From positions 211,367 to 275,366 of IMG/VR virus record IMGVR_UViG_3300021959_006010: a DNA stretch of 64,000 nucleotides. One strand, given 5' to 3'. Position 1 is the first letter of the stretch. The number at the start of each line of letters is the position of its first letter. The translations under genes and the position numbers were made by a program. This document shows, one piece after another, positions 6,882-23,880 of this stretch. The notes under the pieces were generated by a model. It did not search any database, was not told where the DNA came from, and saw only the letters and a program-made list of their open reading frames with translations.

Positions 6882-6939
6882 GGGAGTTCTCCTTGATCAG
6901 TTTTTGAAACGTGTACAAATATTTATACTAAGTATGAGT

Positions 6940-7251
6940 ATGAATATGAAAAGCGAACCCACTGTGGGCAAACTAGAAACAGTCAACAAATACACACCCG
7001 AAACCATCACCTCAGGGCAATCATACGCATGTCTCTACTCAACACGCATACAGTTAACTGAAGATGGTCGCATACCAGAACCAGGCGAAGCTGCACCAAG
7101 ATCAGAACCTCTAACTGGCTTTGCTGTGATACATCAGAGAGATTTAAACAATCGTCGTCTTACAGTAGTAGATGTTAACCTTGCTATTGAACTAGTGGTA
7201 GATTTTGATGATGTGTGGGACATTGACGAAGCTGTATTCCAAGACGCCTGA
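6940..7251 (+). CDS. hypothetical protein
   Basis: start re-assigned to the ATG 5 nt after TAAGTA (6929-6934). Confidence 0.6.
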   Translation: MNMKSEPTVGKLETVNKYTPETITSGQSYACLYSTRIQLTEDGRIPEPGEAAPRSEPLTGFAVIHQRDLNNRRLTVVDVNLAIELVVDFDDVWDIDEAVFQDA

Positions 7252-7823: not shown

Positions 7824-8032
7824 GATCAATGACTTATATAGAGAACCTCAACCAGCCCCGCAGGGGCCCCTACACTACTACTACGCATAGACTCTACTAC
7901 TACACTACTAACACTATAGATATCAATGACTTAGACTACTACACTACTATAGTAGTTCAACACTACACTATAAGTCATTGATATTACTACACTACTATAC
8001 ACTACACTACTACTATACAAATCAATCGCTTA
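7824..8032. promoter_or_regulatory. cluster of IHF-consensus sites in a low-complexity (ACT/ACTAC)n tract
   Basis: WATCAANNNNTTR matches at 7921, 7971 (minus), 8020 and a 1-mismatch copy at 7824. Confidence 0.55.
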
Positions 8033-8148: not shown

Positions 8149-8433
8149 ATGTTGAAATATCAGAATCTTGCACAGGTAGGCGACCGTATCAGAGCGTATG
8201 ACTTCCGCGGTGGTCGTGACTACTACATAGAAGGGGTCGTTACTGCCAAAGGTCGTATTGAAACTCCTCGAGGGGTGTTGATGTATACAGGCTACACCGT
8301 TGACATAGATGTGGACACAATGCCTGGTGCTGGCCGTGTGGGAGATGTTGGTTATGTGCCGTTTGAAACAAGCTTGGACTACGATGAGAGAATTGAACTG
8401 GTGGACACGGAGTTTGCATACTGGGGCAGCTGA
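8149..8433 (+). CDS. early hypothetical protein
   Basis: own promoter, GAGGGA leader. Confidence 0.8.
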   Translation: MLKYQNLAQVGDRIRAYDFRGGRDYYIEGVVTAKGRIETPRGVLMYTGYTVDIDVDTMPGAGRVGDVGYVPFETSLDYDERIELVDTEFAYWGS

Positions 8434-8530
8434 TGAAAAGAACACGCGAACACGAGAACAAAAAAACGGTTGACAGGCGTGTGTGTTGAGGCTATACTGT
8501 GTGTATAGTTAAAAACATAGAGGGCACACT

Positions 8531-8698
8531 ATGCAAACGAACACAAACGAATGGACAACACAGCAGAAGCGCAGGTTAGCGGATGCAGTATTTGAAGCAA
8601 TTGCACTAGCAGAAGCACTGCGTTTAGACTACAGGGTGGATGCTGTAGCAGAATTTGCAGAGGACTTGTATGCTGCTGTAGAAGAAGACGCAGTATAA
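8531..8698 (+). CDS. early hypothetical protein (55 aa, not in ORF track)
   Basis: promoter 8470, GAGGGC 8520, MQTNTNEW... Confidence 0.75.
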   Translation: MQTNTNEWTTQQKRRLADAVFEAIALAEALRLDYRVDAVAEFAEDLYAAVEEDAV

Positions 8699-8782
8699 AA
8701 AGTTTAAAAAAACACTTGACAGTGTGCGTGTACTGTGTTATAGTATACGCATACTAAACATTGCAACAAAAGTGAGGGCTTT

Positions 8783-9232
8783 ATGCAAACAATTAACTAC
8801 AGCACTACAGTAGCGGACTACTACGAGCACTTAACAAATGAGTGTGCGGATGAGACACGTTTTACTATGGATGAACAGTGCTTTGTGCTTGAGTTTTTAG
8901 CAGACACACTAAACGCACTTACACAGCTAAACAGTGAAACACTACGTGAGGAGGGCAACTTTGCACGTATGCAAGACTGTGCGGAAGTAGCGGACAACTA
9001 CGTAATGCTATTAAACAAGTGCAACAGTGAGTATGATGGCGAGGACTGCTATACGTTTACGCTAGAAGATGCGGGTGCTGCTATTTGCAGTTATGACACA
9101 GAGTACAGGGAGTGCATATGCGAGCAGTTTGAAGATGCGCTAAACGAGTACTTTGCACTTGTACAGCAAAACAAACTGCAAAAACTTGACATTGCAAACT
9201 GTTTAGCATGGCGTGTGTTTAACAGTTACTAG
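8783..9232 (+). CDS. early acidic hypothetical protein
   Basis: promoter 8716, GAGGGC 8774; no Pro. Confidence 0.8.
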   Translation: MQTINYSTTVADYYEHLTNECADETRFTMDEQCFVLEFLADTLNALTQLNSETLREEGNFARMQDCAEVADNYVMLLNKCNSEYDGEDCYTFTLEDAGAAICSYDTEYRECICEQFEDALNEYFALVQQNKLQKLDIANCLAWRVFNSY

Positions 9233-9306
9233 AAACAAAACACTTGACAAGTACTGTAGCACATGCTATAGTACTTGTACACATTAAATGCATTAGAGGG
9301 CAAACT

Positions 9307-9519
9307 ATGCAAGTACACATACTACAACTACAAGGCACTGGCGACGACGAGTACGCATGGGAAAACGCAAGCGTTTTTGCAAGCTGGGAAGAAGCACAGG
9401 AACGTGCTGCGCAAATGAGCAAAGAAGACATAGCGGAGTACGGCGAAGCGTTTTGGATAATGGGCGAGAACATGCGCATTGAAACGCACGACTTAGTAGA
9501 CAACAACTGGGGCTACTAA
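9307..9519 (+). CDS. early acidic hypothetical protein
   Basis: promoter 9244, GAGGGC 9296; start MQVH. Confidence 0.8.
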   Translation: MQVHILQLQGTGDDEYAWENASVFASWEEAQERAAQMSKEDIAEYGEAFWIMGENMRIETHDLVDNNWGY

Positions 9520-9643
9520 TACGCAGGCCCCGCTGCTATAAGGGCTGCTATACTACAGTATAGGCAAACTATACACAGTTGCACTTGCATTTTGGTGCAA
9601 CTGTGTTATATTGTTAGCATAACGCATATAGGAGGGCAAACAT

Positions 9644-9958
9644 ATGCAAGCAACTGTAATTAAAACACTAGACAGTGCAGTGCGTGTAACACTAGTAGAA
9701 GATGACGCGGAGTGGCGTGCAGAGTTTGAAGAATACGGATACGACACAGACATGTGGGCTGCATACGGAGACGGAGATGTGTGGCGAGACAACGTACAAG
9801 TTACGCATACACTAAACGATGAAGAGTACGGCTTTATTTGCGGCAATAGTAGTGACAGACGTGTGTACGGCTTTACAGTAGATGTACACAGAGCAGAAGA
9901 AGCAGATGGCAACTTTAGCTTTTGGGTAACAGAAGAACAATACGAACAAATAGGATAA
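9644..9958 (+). CDS. early acidic hypothetical protein
   Basis: GAGGGC 9632; no Pro. Confidence 0.8.
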   Translation: MQATVIKTLDSAVRVTLVEDDAEWRAEFEEYGYDTDMWAAYGDGDVWRDNVQVTHTLNDEEYGFICGNSSDRRVYGFTVDVHRAEEADGNFSFWVTEEQYEQIG

Positions 9959-10029
9959 AAAGAGGTTGACAACGTGTGTATGCTATGCTATAGTGTACAC
10001 ACACTAACACAGCATAGAGAGGGCTTTTT

Positions 10030-10299
10030 ATGCAAAACACAAATACAAAAACTGCACGTAGTATTGTACGCAACATCCTAAAGCAAAACAATGTTATGTA
10101 TTCCTCGCAAAGTTATACCGACAAATGTGCTAATCCTGCATTACGTAACTTGTGCTTCCTAACAAAAAACTTAACGCCTGCAGTTGTGCAACAAATTTCC
10201 TCTGCGCTTAACGTTACAAAAGTGCATGCAACAAAGCCTATGTTTTACAATGTGCATCCGGATGCACGTTATTTGCGCATAGTGCATTGCGCAAAATAA
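10030..10299 (+). CDS. early basic hypothetical protein
   Basis: promoter 9966, GAGGGC 10019; no Gly/Glu/Trp. Confidence 0.75.
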   Translation: MQNTNTKTARSIVRNILKQNNVMYSSQSYTDKCANPALRNLCFLTKNLTPAVVQQISSALNVTKVHATKPMFYNVHPDARYLRIVHCAK

Positions 10300-10307
10300 A
10301 ACTCAAT

Positions 10308-10349
10308 AAAAACAAGCACTTAGCAGAAAAATTATAAGTGCTTGTTTTT
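10308..10349 (+). terminator. inverted repeat / probable terminator
   Basis: AAAAACAAGCACTTA ... TAAGTGCTTGTTTTT. Confidence 0.55.
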
Positions 10350-10435
10350 AAACAAAACTTTTTGCTTTACAAATGCATAAACTTGTAGTATATTGTTTGT
10401 ATAAGTTAACAAGCATACATGCAGAGGAGCACATT

Positions 10436-10684
10436 ATGCAAAACACAAACTACGTATTTTTAAACGCACAAAACGCTGCAATTGTTGTAACAGTAAACAA
10501 TGTAGTTGTTGCTACAGACGTACAAACAGCAGACGCACTTGTACAAGTGTTTTTAACACACAACATTAATGTGCTTACAGACACTATTATGTGCAGCAGC
10601 AGCATAGATTTTGCTGAAGAGGAGGGCTTTGCTACAGACGCTTGTGCGCATAATATTATAGAGGACGCTTTAGCACAGTTGTAA
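10436..10684 (+). CDS. early hypothetical protein
   Basis: GAGGAG RBS; start MQNTNY. Confidence 0.8.
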   Translation: MQNTNYVFLNAQNAAIVVTVNNVVVATDVQTADALVQVFLTHNINVLTDTIMCSSSIDFAEEEGFATDACAHNIIEDALAQL

Positions 10685-10698
10685 TATACTAAAGTATT

Positions 10699-10732
10699 GC
10701 AAGCACTATACTACGTAGTGCTTGCTTTTTTT
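10699..10732 (+). terminator. rho-independent terminator
   Basis: GCAAGCACTA...TAGTGCTTGC followed by a T run. Confidence 0.7.
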
Positions 10733-10786
10733 GTAACTTGTGTTATATTGTTTGTATAACGTAACAGCAAATGCGAGGGCCGCAAC

Positions 10787-11137
10787 ATGCAAAACAACAT
10801 TAAGCGTAACAGCGTAGTAGTAGTAAACTATAAAAACACACAGCGTTTAGCACTTGTTAAAAGTGTACGTGCTAACAACATGCTAAACGTAACTATGTAT
10901 TTGTTTGCTAATGCAAGCATAGCTAGCGACTACTTAGTGCATGCAAGTACAGTAACGCTAACAAGTGTTAGTGCTAAACAGTTTACGCATTTAGCTAAAA
11001 GCTATCCCAACTATGCGTGTACTAGTGCTAACAGCAAACTATTGTTTAAGCTACAGCAACAAGCAGACGCAGCTTATCCGCAGTATGCAGCACTACGCAA
11101 CAACTATGCAAAGTATACTAGTGCGTTTGCTGCATAG
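10787..11137 (+). CDS. early hypothetical protein
   Basis: GAGGGC 10775; no Gly/Glu/Trp in 116 aa. Confidence 0.75.
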   Translation: MQNNIKRNSVVVVNYKNTQRLALVKSVRANNMLNVTMYLFANASIASDYLVHASTVTLTSVSAKQFTHLAKSYPNYACTSANSKLLFKLQQQADAAYPQYAALRNNYAKYTSAFAA

Positions 11138-11217
11138 TACGCTTAAAAAACACTTGACAACTGTGTGTATGTGTGCTACTATGTACACATACACTAAAGC
11201 ATAACGGAGGGCAGTTT

Positions 11218-11466
11218 ATGCAAAACACACAGTACGAAAACGCAGTTATTGCTGCAATTGAAAATTTTGCAAACAGCATTGCAAATTGTGCGCACGACAG
11301 CGTAGTAGAAAACAACGACTACGCAATTACAGACAGCATAGACAGCATTAACTTTTTGTTTAGCAACTACACAAAATACGACAGTGTACAAGCACTTGCA
11401 AACGCTGCACTAGACAGCACACTAGACACTGTAGTACGTGAAAGCATACATGCACAATTAACGTAA
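11218..11466 (+). CDS. early hypothetical protein
   Basis: promoter 11154, GAGGGC 11207; start MQNTQY. Confidence 0.8.
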   Translation: MQNTQYENAVIAAIENFANSIANCAHDSVVENNDYAITDSIDSINFLFSNYTKYDSVQALANAALDSTLDTVVRESIHAQLT

Positions 11467-11537
11467 AAAAGTAGTTGACAACTGCGTGTACATATGCTAT
11501 AGTGTATGTACACGTTAACAATGTAAGAGGGCATCTT

Positions 11538-11870
11538 ATGTATTACATTTACGAGAACAGCACAACCTACATTATTGGCAAGCCGGACCGCAATGGTGTA
11601 GCCCGTCCGGATCATCGCCAGTCGTATAAGACTATGGCCGCAGCGAAAGCAGCACTCACACGCATCTGCAAGGCAGAAGGCTTGTTGCCAACCGATCCCA
11701 ACTATGCACTGTATCGCTATTCGATTGCAGAGGCCAGCTACTTCCACAGCATGATTGAAAAGAAAGTACTGCGTAAAGTACTAGAAGGCTTTGGTGGCAA
11801 GGAGTATTACGAACCTGTTAACACTCCTGCCTATATGTCACCTGCAAGCGAAACCTACTGGAGCATGTAA
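11538..11870 (+). CDS. early hypothetical phage protein
   Basis: promoter 11475, GAGGGC 11527; C-terminal NTP.Y.SP.SE.YWSM. Confidence 0.8.
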   Translation: MYYIYENSTTYIIGKPDRNGVARPDHRQSYKTMAAAKAALTRICKAEGLLPTDPNYALYRYSIAEASYFHSMIEKKVLRKVLEGFGGKEYYEPVNTPAYMSPASETYWSM

Positions 11871-11998
11871 GATGGATCTACTCCAACGATACCCGAACGC
11901 ACTCGAGCAGCTAGAAATCCTCAAAAAAGATTATTTAGGGGTTGACAATTCTGTAGAGGAGTGCTATATTAGTAGTATAACAAATGGAGGGCAATCCA

Positions 11999-13186: not shown

Positions 13187-13263
13187 GGGCCTTTAGCTCA
13201 ATCGGTTAGAGCACCGGACTCATAATCCGTAGGTTGCGAGTTCGAGTCTCGCAGGGCCCACCA
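13187..13263 (+). tRNA. tRNA with CAT anticodon, probably tRNA-Ile2 (lysidine type)
   Basis: GGGCCT acceptor stem, CT-CAT-AA loop, TTCGAG T-loop, encoded CCA; body resembles bacterial Ile2 tRNAs more than Met. Confidence 0.85.
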
Positions 13264-13268
13264 AGTAA

Positions 13269-13345
13269 CTGCCCTTAGCTCAGCTGGATAGAGCAACAGC
13301 CTTCTAAGCTGTGGGTCGTAGGTTCGAATCCTACAGGGCAGGCCA
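13269..13345 (+). tRNA. tRNA-Arg(TCT)
   Basis: CTGCCCT/AGGGCAG acceptor, ACAGC-CTTCTAA-GCTGT anticodon arm, CCA. Confidence 0.95.
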
Positions 13346-13349
13346 ATTA

Positions 13350-13433
13350 GCCCGCGTGGTGGAATAGGTAGACACAAGGGACTTAAAATCCCTCGCTTAT
13401 GGCGTGCCAGTTCGAGTCTGGCCGCGGGCACCA
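13350..13433 (+). tRNA. tRNA-Leu(TAA)
   Basis: GCCCGCG/CGCGGGC acceptor, AGGGA-CTTAAAA-TCCCT, long variable arm, CCA. Confidence 0.95.
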
Positions 13434-22410: not shown

Positions 22411-23880
22411 CTACTTGTTTGCAGCAGCCGTCCAAACCTTAACTCCATATTGTTTTTCAAATGCTTGTGCATCTTCTACAGTGTTAACAATGGGTTTACC
22501 CTTGATGTTAAGTGAGGTATTTAGTAGCACAGGACAGCCTGTAGCTTCGTACCAACGTTCTAGCAGTTTTCTAAAGCCCACGCTTTGCGTTGAAGAAACT
22601 GTCTGTACCCGAGAGGTGCCGTCCCTGTGCGTGATTGCAGGTAGTCCAGGATCCTTGCAAGTTGCAGTGTATTGCATGTAGGGGTTTGCATATCCGTCGA
22701 AATAGGTAGACGCATGTTCCTCCAATACTGCTGGCGCAAAAGGTCTAAACTTCTGTCGTTGTTTGATTTCGTTAACTCTATCTTTAATGTCTGGCCTTCT
22801 GGGGTCTGCAAGGAGGGAGCGGTGTCCAAAAGCTCTGGGCCCGAACTCTGCCCTGCCGTTGGCCACGCCAACAATACCAGTAGTAAGCAACTCGTTAAGT
22901 ACTTCTTCAACAGGATAATCTCCTTCTATGTTATAACCTGTGTACACATGATCCATTTCCATGTGTTGTTTTTTATGGGCTAGTACACAACCTATTGCAC
23001 TGCCTGCATCACCCGGGTTAGGCATGATCCATACGTTATCGAAAAACTTGTATGCTAAATGGTTAGCACTGCAATTTAACGCACATCCTCCCATTAACAC
23101 AAGGTTTTTGCTAGGCGCCATTATGCGGGCTACATTCAAAATACCTTGAAAAATCTTTTCATACAGGTTCTGGGCTGCTGCCGCTATGTCAAAATAGTCT
23201 TGTTCAGTGGTCAAATCCTTGCGCCAGTCTAAGCACCCTCTATGTAAATTGCGTTTAAAAGTAATAGGGTGTCCATAAGGGTCAACAAAATCTTCAACCA
23301 TAGCTTGGTACAAACGATCTGGGTCACCGTATGCAGCCATACCCATAAGAATGTATTCGTCTTCTTGAGGTTTTAATCCAACCCTTTGCGTGATTGCCGA
23401 GTACCATAGTCCCACGGAATGTGGATATTTTTGGGAATAGACCTTTTTGAGTCTTCCTTCTTTACCATGCCAGATAGTAAGTGTATCAAACTCTCCAATG
23501 CTGTCGATACTAATAACGCAGGCTTCTGTAAAAGGACTAGTATAATAACCGGCAGCAGCATGGGAAAGATGATGATCAGTATACCTAATAGGAGCATGTA
23601 TCCCATAAGATCCAAGATACTTACGAATATTGTTTTCACCCAACCGTATTCCTTGCCCTGCTCTAAATTGTCTAACAGTTTTGACAAGGGGTCTTTCATA
23701 CCAAATAATTTCATCTGGTTCTCCCCATTTCCTTGCATATTCAATTAACTCGTTATTTAAGTCGGGGTCGTTTTTTATACCGCTAAAACGTTCGCTATGA
23801 CTCGCAAACTCTAGTCCGTCTTCTGAAAAAACAGCTAGAGCAGCATCATGACTGTTAGCACTTATACCCCATGTAATCAT
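22411..23880 (-). CDS. carbamoyltransferase (NodU/CmcH family)
   Basis: SHDAA, ERFS..KND, HHLSHAAAGYY, MGMAAYG, GGCALNC.AN, GDAGSAIG, EFGPRAFG.RSLLADP, FRPFAP, LLNTSLN. Confidence 0.92.
   Translation of the reverse strand: MITWGISANSHDAALAVFSEDGLEFASHSERFSGIKNDPDLNNELIEYARKWGEPDEIIWYERPLVKTVRQFRAGQGIRLGENNIRKYLGSYGIHAPIRYTDHHLSHAAAGYYTSPFTEACVISIDSIGEFDTLTIWHGKEGRLKKVYSQKYPHSVGLWYSAITQRVGLKPQEDEYILMGMAAYGDPDRLYQAMVEDFVDPYGHPITFKRNLHRGCLDWRKDLTTEQDYFDIAAAAQNLYEKIFQGILNVARIMAPSKNLVLMGGCALNCSANHLAYKFFDNVWIMPNPGDAGSAIGCVLAHKKQHMEMDHVYTGYNIEGDYPVEEVLNELLTTGIVGVANGRAEFGPRAFGHRSLLADPRRPDIKDRVNEIKQRQKFRPFAPAVLEEHASTYFDGYANPYMQYTATCKDPGLPAITHRDGTSRVQTVSSTQSVGFRKLLERWYEATGCPVLLNTSLNIKGKPIVNTVEDAQAFEKQYGVKVWTAAANK

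Follow-up and report, generated by a model that had tools for sequence, protein, structure and literature searches.

Why should a block of small phage genes be almost empty of one class of dinucleotide on one strand, and why should the excluded class change from one gene to another? The question is raised by a window of 64,000 nucleotides (positions 211,367 to 275,366 of the IMG/VR virus record IMGVR_UViG_3300021959_006010, that is, the final 64 kb of a 275,366-bp contig), to which the positions below refer unless a contig is named. It contains an exclusion zone of about 3 kb, consisting of the small early genes g1 to g8, all on the + strand, where 27 YC (TC and CC) are found on that strand against about 290 expected; in some of these genes it is GR (GA and GG), the reverse complement of YC, that is missing, alone or as well. 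A sequence-only reading of g5 and g7 had explained this by a ban on YC occurring on both strands close together, as an evasion of an enzyme needing two opposed sites. Our analysis leads us to prefer, tentatively and at somewhat short of an even chance, a different answer, namely that transcripts lacking the motif evade a dinucleotide-specific attack on single-stranded RNA or DNA. After it we place, in this order, evasion of the termination factor Rho alone and the opposed-site model of the sequence-only reading.

The exclusion is real and far beyond chance. The YC-free runs in the zone measure 1168, 545, 476, 224 and 455 nt, whereas such runs average 11.8 nt over the genome and have their 99.9th percentile at 125 nt, and in the whole 275,366-bp contig there is no second such zone, no other 500-nt window coming near this depletion. 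The YC that survive on the + strand are confined to a few places: 9528-30 (within GGCCCCGC, a conserved motif), 18 sites at 10076-10303 that fall in g5 or just 3' of it, position 10780, and a pair of g7 codons for Pro. In the first part of the zone (Zone A in Table 1) TC occurs 0 times against 66 expected and CC 3 times against 54 expected, and no other di- or trinucleotide is unusual there beyond those with YC, so the constraint in this part is purely one on YC; for the same reason a longer hidden motif was rejected. GR is lowered only downstream, which divides the zone into two parts, 8360-10022 with YC alone excluded and 10023-11533 with GR minimised too. Surviving YC sites lean weakly to YCS contexts, in a count where homologous sites enter twice. 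As for base composition, C makes up 18% of the zone (21-22% in controls) and T is unchanged, while AC and GC reach 1.6-1.7 times expectation and TT and CT about 1.2 times.

The bias also exceeds what the amino-acid sequences impose. In 2000 resamplings of synonymous codons, based on the codon usage of the early genes nearby, g1-g4, g6 and g8 were expected to hold 9-22 YC each (lowest resample 2-8), while all six have none. GR is not reduced in g1-g4, and lies near or at the minimum forced by the amino acids in g6 and g8 (Table 1). The proteins pay for this: the six YC-free genes encode 542 amino acids in total without a single Pro (3.6% in control genes), their Ser codons are 23 AGY and 0 TCN, and TTC, ATC, ACC and GCC are never used.

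Two genes of the zone follow other rules. A recount bears out the coordinates and compositions that the sequence-only reading had given for them, g5 (89 amino acids) having P4, D2 and no G, E or W, and g7 (116 amino acids) having P2, D2 and again no G, E or W. In g5 the exclusion is flipped to the other class, as that reading had noticed, with 3 GR against a resampled mean of 12.4 (minimum 5), 2 of them forced. The flip is not peculiar to this phage, since the g5 family (54 clusters) is GR-poor and YC-tolerant in several phages, with essentially no Gly or Trp, few Asp or Glu, and 0-6 Pro. In the related contigs L129, L130 and L008, g5 is co-oriented with the early genes, has GR at most 1 above the forced minimum and carries 2-5 YC per 100 nt; in L131, where the gene stands alone, the pattern is relaxed (GR 11, forced 7). 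Judged from the sequences of the family, the flip is a stable family trait and neither a local accident nor the relic of a recent inversion. A recently inverted cassette was accordingly rejected as the origin of g5, the family being both GR-free and co-oriented with its neighbours in the window, L008, L129, L130 and L131. Neither was there any similarity supporting an origin of g5 or g7 from the antisense strand of YC-free genes, and no antisense promoter, which could make a minus-strand RNA the functional product, was found 3' of g5 in five phages.

In g7 both classes are avoided, with YC 5 against a resampled mean of 25.9 (minimum 14) and GR 2, both forced, against 13.4 (minimum 4). Every YC or GR site left in g7 lies in a codon for Pro or Asp, or where such a codon meets the one before it, and the clade to which it belongs keeps only the invariant D48, D94 and P98 and the nearly invariant P74. 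Distant homologues in the same family (44 clusters) have up to P7, D7, E4, G3 and W2. In L124-L126, which have no zone, g7 is embedded in normal DNA and convergent to the early genes, with GR at most 2 above the forced minimum and coding-strand YC near normal (3.7-6.1 per 100 nt); in L127-L128 both YC and GR relax. The view that the nucleotide exclusion dictates amino-acid content is thus upheld by comparison with homologues, a check that the sequence-only reading had itself proposed and that fails to refute it, distant g7 proteins regaining P, D, E and G, and a g8 homologue just outside the zone of L063 regaining YC (10), one Pro and TCN Ser. Composition therefore tracks the prevailing nucleotide regime rather than membership in a protein family. 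In L124, a g8 homologue that stands isolated has YC 0.

The proteins of g5 and g7 are real, folded and conserved, and their structures are modelled with confidence. The g5 model (predicted local distance difference test score, pLDDT, 93.8) has a ferredoxin-like alpha/beta fold, and that of g7 (pLDDT 87.9) an SH3/Tudor-like barrel followed by helices. Fold searches gave weak generic matches only (ferredoxin-like for g5; SH3/Tudor/KOW-like for g7), the protein atlas offered no function for either, and Pfam and PHROGs had no match for g0-g9.

A mutational footprint without selection, left by an APOBEC-like YC deaminase or by ultraviolet light (UV) with transcription-coupled repair, either of which would turn YC into YT on the exposed non-template strand of heavily transcribed early genes, has to be weighed against these compositions, and we give it little likelihood. 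YC is the target class of APOBEC3, whose TC-depleted footprints in human viruses are likewise a strand-dependent depletion of YC type caused by a host agent on single-stranded nucleic acid; those footprints, however, are partial and concern eukaryotic viruses (PMC7449416). Such an origin would suit the g7 survivors, which are exactly the invariant and nearly invariant residues named above, and the phage does encode a second small open reading frame of deaminase fold. Against it, no signature of C-to-T change is visible in the zone: the share of T has not risen, TT and CT gain only the 1.2-fold given above, and the lost C is now found in AC and GC. The early genes g9-g13, with the same promoters, are spared, and the GR-free coding strands of co-oriented g5 genes are left unexplained. 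YC is a hot spot for (6-4) photoproducts; under UV, however, TT should be the most avoided step, and it is not. Hardening against UV was rejected on the same ground, and also because the clean strand is mostly the non-template one. To our knowledge, no bacterial antiphage deaminase with a YC preference has been described.

Is the zone an isolated accident? Relatives were found by anchoring on the neighbouring conserved genes and on the pattern of the start region. The same kind of zone is present in at least nine related metagenomic contigs (L001/L006, L004, L012, L063, L073, L009, L008, L056, L129 and L130; L049 has nearly the same sequence as L012), and absent from the relatives L007, L010, L011 and Pseudomonas phage PA5oct. 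In about 45 zone genes from 10 contigs the coding strand is free of YC and Pro is all but missing. Summed over 19 kb of zones, YC falls to about 0.3 per 100 nt, compared with 5.5 genome-wide, and to 0 within most genes. Homologous pairs of zone genes have proportions of synonymous differences (pS) of 0.27-0.70, near synonymous saturation, and still YC 0-1 in most; their ratio of nonsynonymous to synonymous rates (dN/dS) is 0.16-0.36, g5 and g7 included. Low dN/dS together with YC exclusion kept at such divergence shows real coding genes under ongoing constraint. YC is also 0 in a natural g4 variant that carries 29 differences within 187 nt, and both the population variants and the saturated homologues therefore point to ongoing selection. 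Near-identical DNA is present in several metagenome runs, made independently between 2018 and 2025 on marine, estuary and sediment samples, which excludes an assembly artefact.

The extent of the purge bears on Rho. According to this explanation, early messages free of YC cannot load Rho and so avoid the premature termination that foreign, poorly coupled transcripts suffer, the GR avoidance being a separate matter. The specificity fits exactly, since the primary binding clefts of Rho bind 5'-YC, as CC and UC dinucleotides, on nascent RNA (PMC13323073, PMC12360218), and Rho avoidance is known to shape the composition of coding strands and to form a barrier to foreign genes (PMC13323073). Across the whole contig coding-strand YC is half of GR (5.5 and 11.2 per 100 nt), evenly in the different gene blocks; in the zone the constraint lies on the message strand with its untranslated regions, YC is 0 in g1-g4, g6 and g8, and a few isolated YC sites are tolerated, all of which would suit Rho. 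However, the binding of Rho is cooperative and involves several YC within about 80 nt, so the last few should not matter: 1-2 per 100 nt should suffice and residual isolated sites should be neutral, whereas the zones reach about 0.3, with zero YC within genes at the cost of every Pro. This level suggests a cost for each site and not a density threshold. The cassettes are in addition short, with strong ribosome-binding sites and in some cases intrinsic terminators; total C stays at 18%, merely shifted behind purines; the forced-minimum GR in g5, g6, g7 and g8 is left without an explanation; and the g5 message, rich in C and poor in G, would be a good Rho target. Compared with the Rho utilisation and purine bias described so far (PMC13323073, PMC12360218), the zone would share a YC-specific reader of nascent RNA, a constraint on coding-strand composition, an effect on codon choice and a barrier to foreign genes, but known avoidance is mild and genome-wide, while here it is absolute, restricted to a few cassettes, accompanied by GR avoidance and paid for with a whole amino acid. 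We therefore consider Rho as the only cause unlikely, though ahead of the remaining alternatives.

Which strand is kept clean is informative as well. In nearly every case it is the message strand of the gene itself, and an inverted gene takes its clean strand with it: a two-gene segment that is on the + strand in L012 and inverted in L004 has a coding strand without YC in both. Where DNA is not transcribed, both motifs are tolerated: two divergent promoters within the L004 zone are separated by a spacer of about 70 bp in which YC and GR are plentiful. This segment (L004 6727-6830) has 13-bp direct repeats (ACTTAACATGTTAA) on either side and may have arisen as a small insertion or as a scar of recombination. 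At L004 6845-7163 lies a two-sided gene (6912-7163, 83 amino acids, MQKIQNTQ...) with a GR-free leader and no recognisable ribosome-binding site. An exclusion that is autonomous to the gene and attached to the message strand argues against a mechanism of opposed sites or restriction.

Such a mechanism was the proposal of the sequence-only reading. Developed further, it has an agent acting on DNA that would need close YC on both strands, as in two-site restriction or in opposed nicks or deaminations, and one clean strand would suffice, the coding strand being usually cleared since only Pro is lost. Its merit is that it accounts for the reverse-complement classes and for g5 and g7 being both acceptable. 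The asymmetry of cost is real, for clearing YC costs Pro while clearing GR costs Gly, Asp, Glu and Trp, and promoter DNA is also cleared in the two-sided part. At the scale of cassettes the expected pattern is indeed seen, windows with YC on both strands being rare in the zone (5-6 of 63-105) but making up 83-99% of the controls. At close range it disappears, for no rule of spacing emerges: of the 27 YC on the + strand, 7 have an opposed site within 5 nt, at four places (9526-30, 10118-20, 10257-61 and 10778-80) such sites are only 2-4 nt apart, and in g5 close opposed pairs are not depleted (3 observed, 1.33 under the null, P=0.2). Unforced GR, moreover, is not reduced in g1-g4.

The proposed evasion itself fares no better. 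Clean genes of 250-350 bp stand isolated in normal DNA in L124-L126, where cleanliness would be pointless against double-strand breaks or two-site restriction cuts, since breaks elsewhere are equally lethal. Nothing protects the remainder of the genome, and the zone is at no consistent contig end, being internal in this contig and in L012 and near the contig start in L001 (these contigs are incomplete). A 2-nt motif is not a restriction site, and its orientation flips at g5. Avoidance of palindromic restriction is contradicted by palindromes without YC or GR steps, which are enriched in the zone (4-mers 68 per kb against 44 in controls; 6-mers 20.8 against 8.4), and no DNA methyltransferase or DpdA gene was found in the contig. 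Restriction sites that are missing from the early regions of phages, or biased there to one strand, are known from T7 with EcoP15I and from the pre-early region of T5. These cases resemble the zone in that evasion at the level of sequence is concentrated in early DNA and site orientation matters, but the motif here has 2 nt and not 4-6 nt, the trait is gene-autonomous and persists in isolated genes, and other palindromes are enriched. Two-site restriction and opposed-break mechanisms therefore fit poorly, and we regard the opposed-site model as improbable. Selection against RNA structure was rejected too, since two-sided sequence makes perfect hairpins, for example in the terminators.

The strand pattern also bears on a further suggestion, that the phage modifies its DNA at YC or GR and that genes which host RNA polymerase must read from the incoming DNA keep one strand clean. 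Context-specific base replacement occurs in some phages, and a carbamoyltransferase gene lies beside the replication genes, with a 2-oxoglutarate (2OG)-Fe(II) oxygenase added in the related L124 and L126. However, the contig encodes canonical thymidylate synthase and dCMP deaminase (a pair at 110-112 kb), the clean strand differs between genes, and the exclusion is missing from other early genes that carry the same promoters. No DpdA/TGT, C5 or N4/N6 methyltransferase gene was found in the contig, a negative that is weak at a completeness of about 77%; 7-deazaguanine or methylation as the explanation was set aside for want of such a gene. This is the least probable of the alternatives, and very improbable in our judgement.

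We return to the preferred answer, evasion by motif-null transcripts. The zone would consist of small accessory early genes arranged as cassettes, each equipped with a promoter and a ribosome-binding site and in many cases also with a terminator, and selection would keep the message strand of each cassette (the mRNA and the identical, exposed non-template DNA) free of a two-letter motif. The motif would be 5'-YC-3' in most cassettes, 5'-GR-3' in the g5 and g7 families, both in the g7 of this phage and partly both in g6 and g8. The purpose would be to escape host effectors, or possibly shut-off effectors of phages, that read a dinucleotide in single-stranded nucleic acid. Each remaining site would be a separate liability, leading to a purge to zero in which only codons for indispensable residues survive. 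The sacrifice of a whole amino acid together with the near-zero purge does point to a liability per site, as with an enzyme cutting or modifying at a short motif. The exclusion, its conservation, its attachment to the message strand of each single gene and its effect on protein composition are shown by the data, while evasion as the cause and the identity of the reader or readers we infer. For GR the candidates are mRNA ADP-ribosyltransferases like CmdT, and for YC an ADP-ribosyltransferase, RNase or deaminase still uncharacterised, or Rho.

CmdT, of the CmdTAC defence system, ADP-ribosylates the adenine of GA in single-stranded mRNA, with faint activity on GG and AG, and blocks translation; its discoverers judged escape by site loss implausible (Vassallo et al., Nature 2024, PMC11618068). 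GA and GG are precisely the steps missing from the messages of g5 and g7, and the zone would give the first natural case of escape by site loss. The differences are that no CmdT homologue or host is known here, that most cassettes avoid YC and not GA, and that the ribosome-binding sites of g5 and g7 retain GAGG. On the whole, the closest known phenomena are milder or concern longer motifs, and a literature search gave no published description of YC-free or GR-free phage genes. The accessory early cassettes could be counter-defence genes that have to be translated even once an effector is active, the YC purge answering an effector, widespread in marine bacteria and yet to be discovered, that acts on YC in single-stranded RNA or DNA, and the GR-free genes answering CmdT-like enzymes; this more specific version we hold to be possible but rather unlikely.

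Several observations weigh against evasion by transcripts. The GAGG kept in the ribosome-binding sites of the GR-free genes, GAGAGGGC in g5 and CGAGGGCC in g7, is itself a target of CmdT type, and g5 of the window tolerates its full complement of YC (Table 1). The two excluded classes are exact reverse complements, which looks like a symmetry of DNA strands, whereas the transcript explanation needs two readers. The promoter regions of g6 and g7 are also without GR and YC although they lie upstream of their own transcription starts, and their -35 hexamers (TTTACA and TTGCTT), in a two-sided stretch, are off consensus. The reverse-complement classes and the exclusion in promoter DNA keep a cause at the DNA level alive. 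Finally, the early genes g9-g13 share the promoter and leader module yet have normal composition, so that why these cassettes are singled out rests on inference. On the other side, GR avoidance holds at the positions that amino acids leave free, g5, g7 and g8 having at most one GR above the forced number, and the zone cassettes, as variable orphan genes, may serve counter-defence.

Features of the zone are listed in Table 1.

Table 1. Features of the exclusion zone and its downstream border (positions in the window; GR counts with the number forced by the amino acids)
Feature	Position	Strand	Description
Exclusion zone	8360-11533	+	27 YC, about 290 expected
Zone A	8360-10022	+	YC excluded, GR normal; acidic proteins g1-g4
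g1	8531-8698	+	55 amino acids; YC 0, Pro 0
g2	8783-9232	+	149 amino acids, acidic; YC 0, Pro 0; homologues in L004 and L063 also YC 0
g3	9307-9519	+	70 amino acids; YC 0
GGCCCCGCTGCTAT motif	9526-9539	+	sole YC cluster in Zone A
Intrinsic-terminator-like hairpin	9573-9606	+	only steps free of both YC and GR
g4	9644-9958	+	104 amino acids, very acidic; YC 0
g5 promoter	9966-9994	+	consensus sigma-70-type: TTGACA, 17 nt, TG, TATAGT
g5	10030-10299	+	89 amino acids, basic; flipped: GR 3 (forced 2), YC 17
Two-way terminator-like hairpin 3' of g5	10311-10349	.	A-run, stem AACAAGCACTTA / TAAGTGCTTGTT, T-run
g6	10436-10684	+	82 amino acids; YC 0, GR 14 (forced 11); cassette most widely shared in metagenomes
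Terminator-like hairpin 3' of g6	10699-10725	+	from hairpin scan
g7	10787-11137	+	116 amino acids, basic; two-sided: YC 5, all in two conserved Pro codons; GR 2 (forced 2), in two invariant Asp codons
g8	11218-11466	+	82 amino acids; YC 0, GR 11 (forced 11, the minimum)
g9	11538-11870	+	first gene of normal composition, YC 31, GR 31; same promoter module

The cassettes are built from common modules: most have a sigma-70-type promoter (TTGACA, 17 nt, TATAGT), some a hairpin terminator, and all of g1-g8 a ribosome-binding site of GAGGGC type (GAGGAGC in g6), with ATGCAA at the start. The hairpin 3' of g5 was read directly from the sequence and was not listed by the hairpin scan. The promoters of g6 and g7 (10366-10394 and 10726-10765) form a second class (TGTGTTATATTGTTTGTATAAC), with -35 hexamers departing from TTGACA such that GA is lost. 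Gene g9 is kept in relatives both with and without the zone. Metagenomes contain many insertions and deletions at the level of cassettes, with joints at the common promoter and terminator modules, and judged from these sequences the cassettes appear to be shuffled there. At 8300-11900, contigs from the same samples (runs X2, X3, X4 and X6) show many different junctions with the zone, such as 9519 to 11145 or 10355 to 11489, and the coverage of g6 is about 5-10 times that of its neighbours. Low-complexity ACTAC/CTACTA repeats, nearly free of G, occupy 7860-8030, just 5' of the first early promoter (8083). A motif, AGGCCCCGCTGCTA, has three copies in the genome (7512-7524, 7753-7765 and 9526-9538), all in or beside the early region, and similar copies occur in relatives, at about 5356 and 5800 in L004 and also in L012; one of those in L004 lies 3' of a consensus promoter and 5' of a T-run. 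The motif may be part of a small RNA or a protein-binding site. A cluster of three tRNAs, Met(CAT), Arg(TCT) and Leu(TAA), lies inside the early region at 13187-13433, and these were the only matches in an Rfam scan.

The contig, with an estimated completeness of about 77%, comes from a giant myovirus encoding a tail sheath, a T4-type large terminase, a DnaB helicase and an NrdC.10-like ATPase. There is no close relative among isolated phages; the nearest is Pseudomonas phage PA5oct, with a terminase of the same T4/PA5oct class but only 54% identity, and its syntenic 40 kb are without a zone. The carbamoyltransferase is NolO-like (22411-23880, minus strand) and adjoins the DnaB helicase gene in a neighbourhood kept in related phages, while the 2OG-Fe(II) oxygenase is found beside the same helicase only at L124 4003-4611 and L126 1866-2468; this neighbourhood could represent an auxiliary metabolic gene or a DNA-modification gene. 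The second deaminase-fold open reading frame lies outside the window (G000:C1:157808-158125, minus strand); it is a minimal zinc-deaminase fold of 105 amino acids with HAE...PCxxC, adjoins a radical-SAM protein, and is separate from the pair of dCMP deaminase and thymidylate synthase.

What does the zone mean for these phages? If evasion is true, motif avoidance works even for a motif of two letters, a possibility that seemed implausible to the discoverers of CmdT. YC-free or GR-free runs longer than 300 nt would then be a simple signature for candidate counter-defence genes in uncultured phages, and such runs could predict the specificity of host effectors yet to be characterised. If Rho is the reader, the zone would be the most extreme Rho effect known on coding sequence and a new antitermination strategy that works by sequence only. 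In addition, the zone offers natural proteins of reduced alphabet with confident predicted folds, having no Pro in the six YC-free genes and an SH3-like g7 without Gly, Glu or Trp, and these bear on protein evolution and design.

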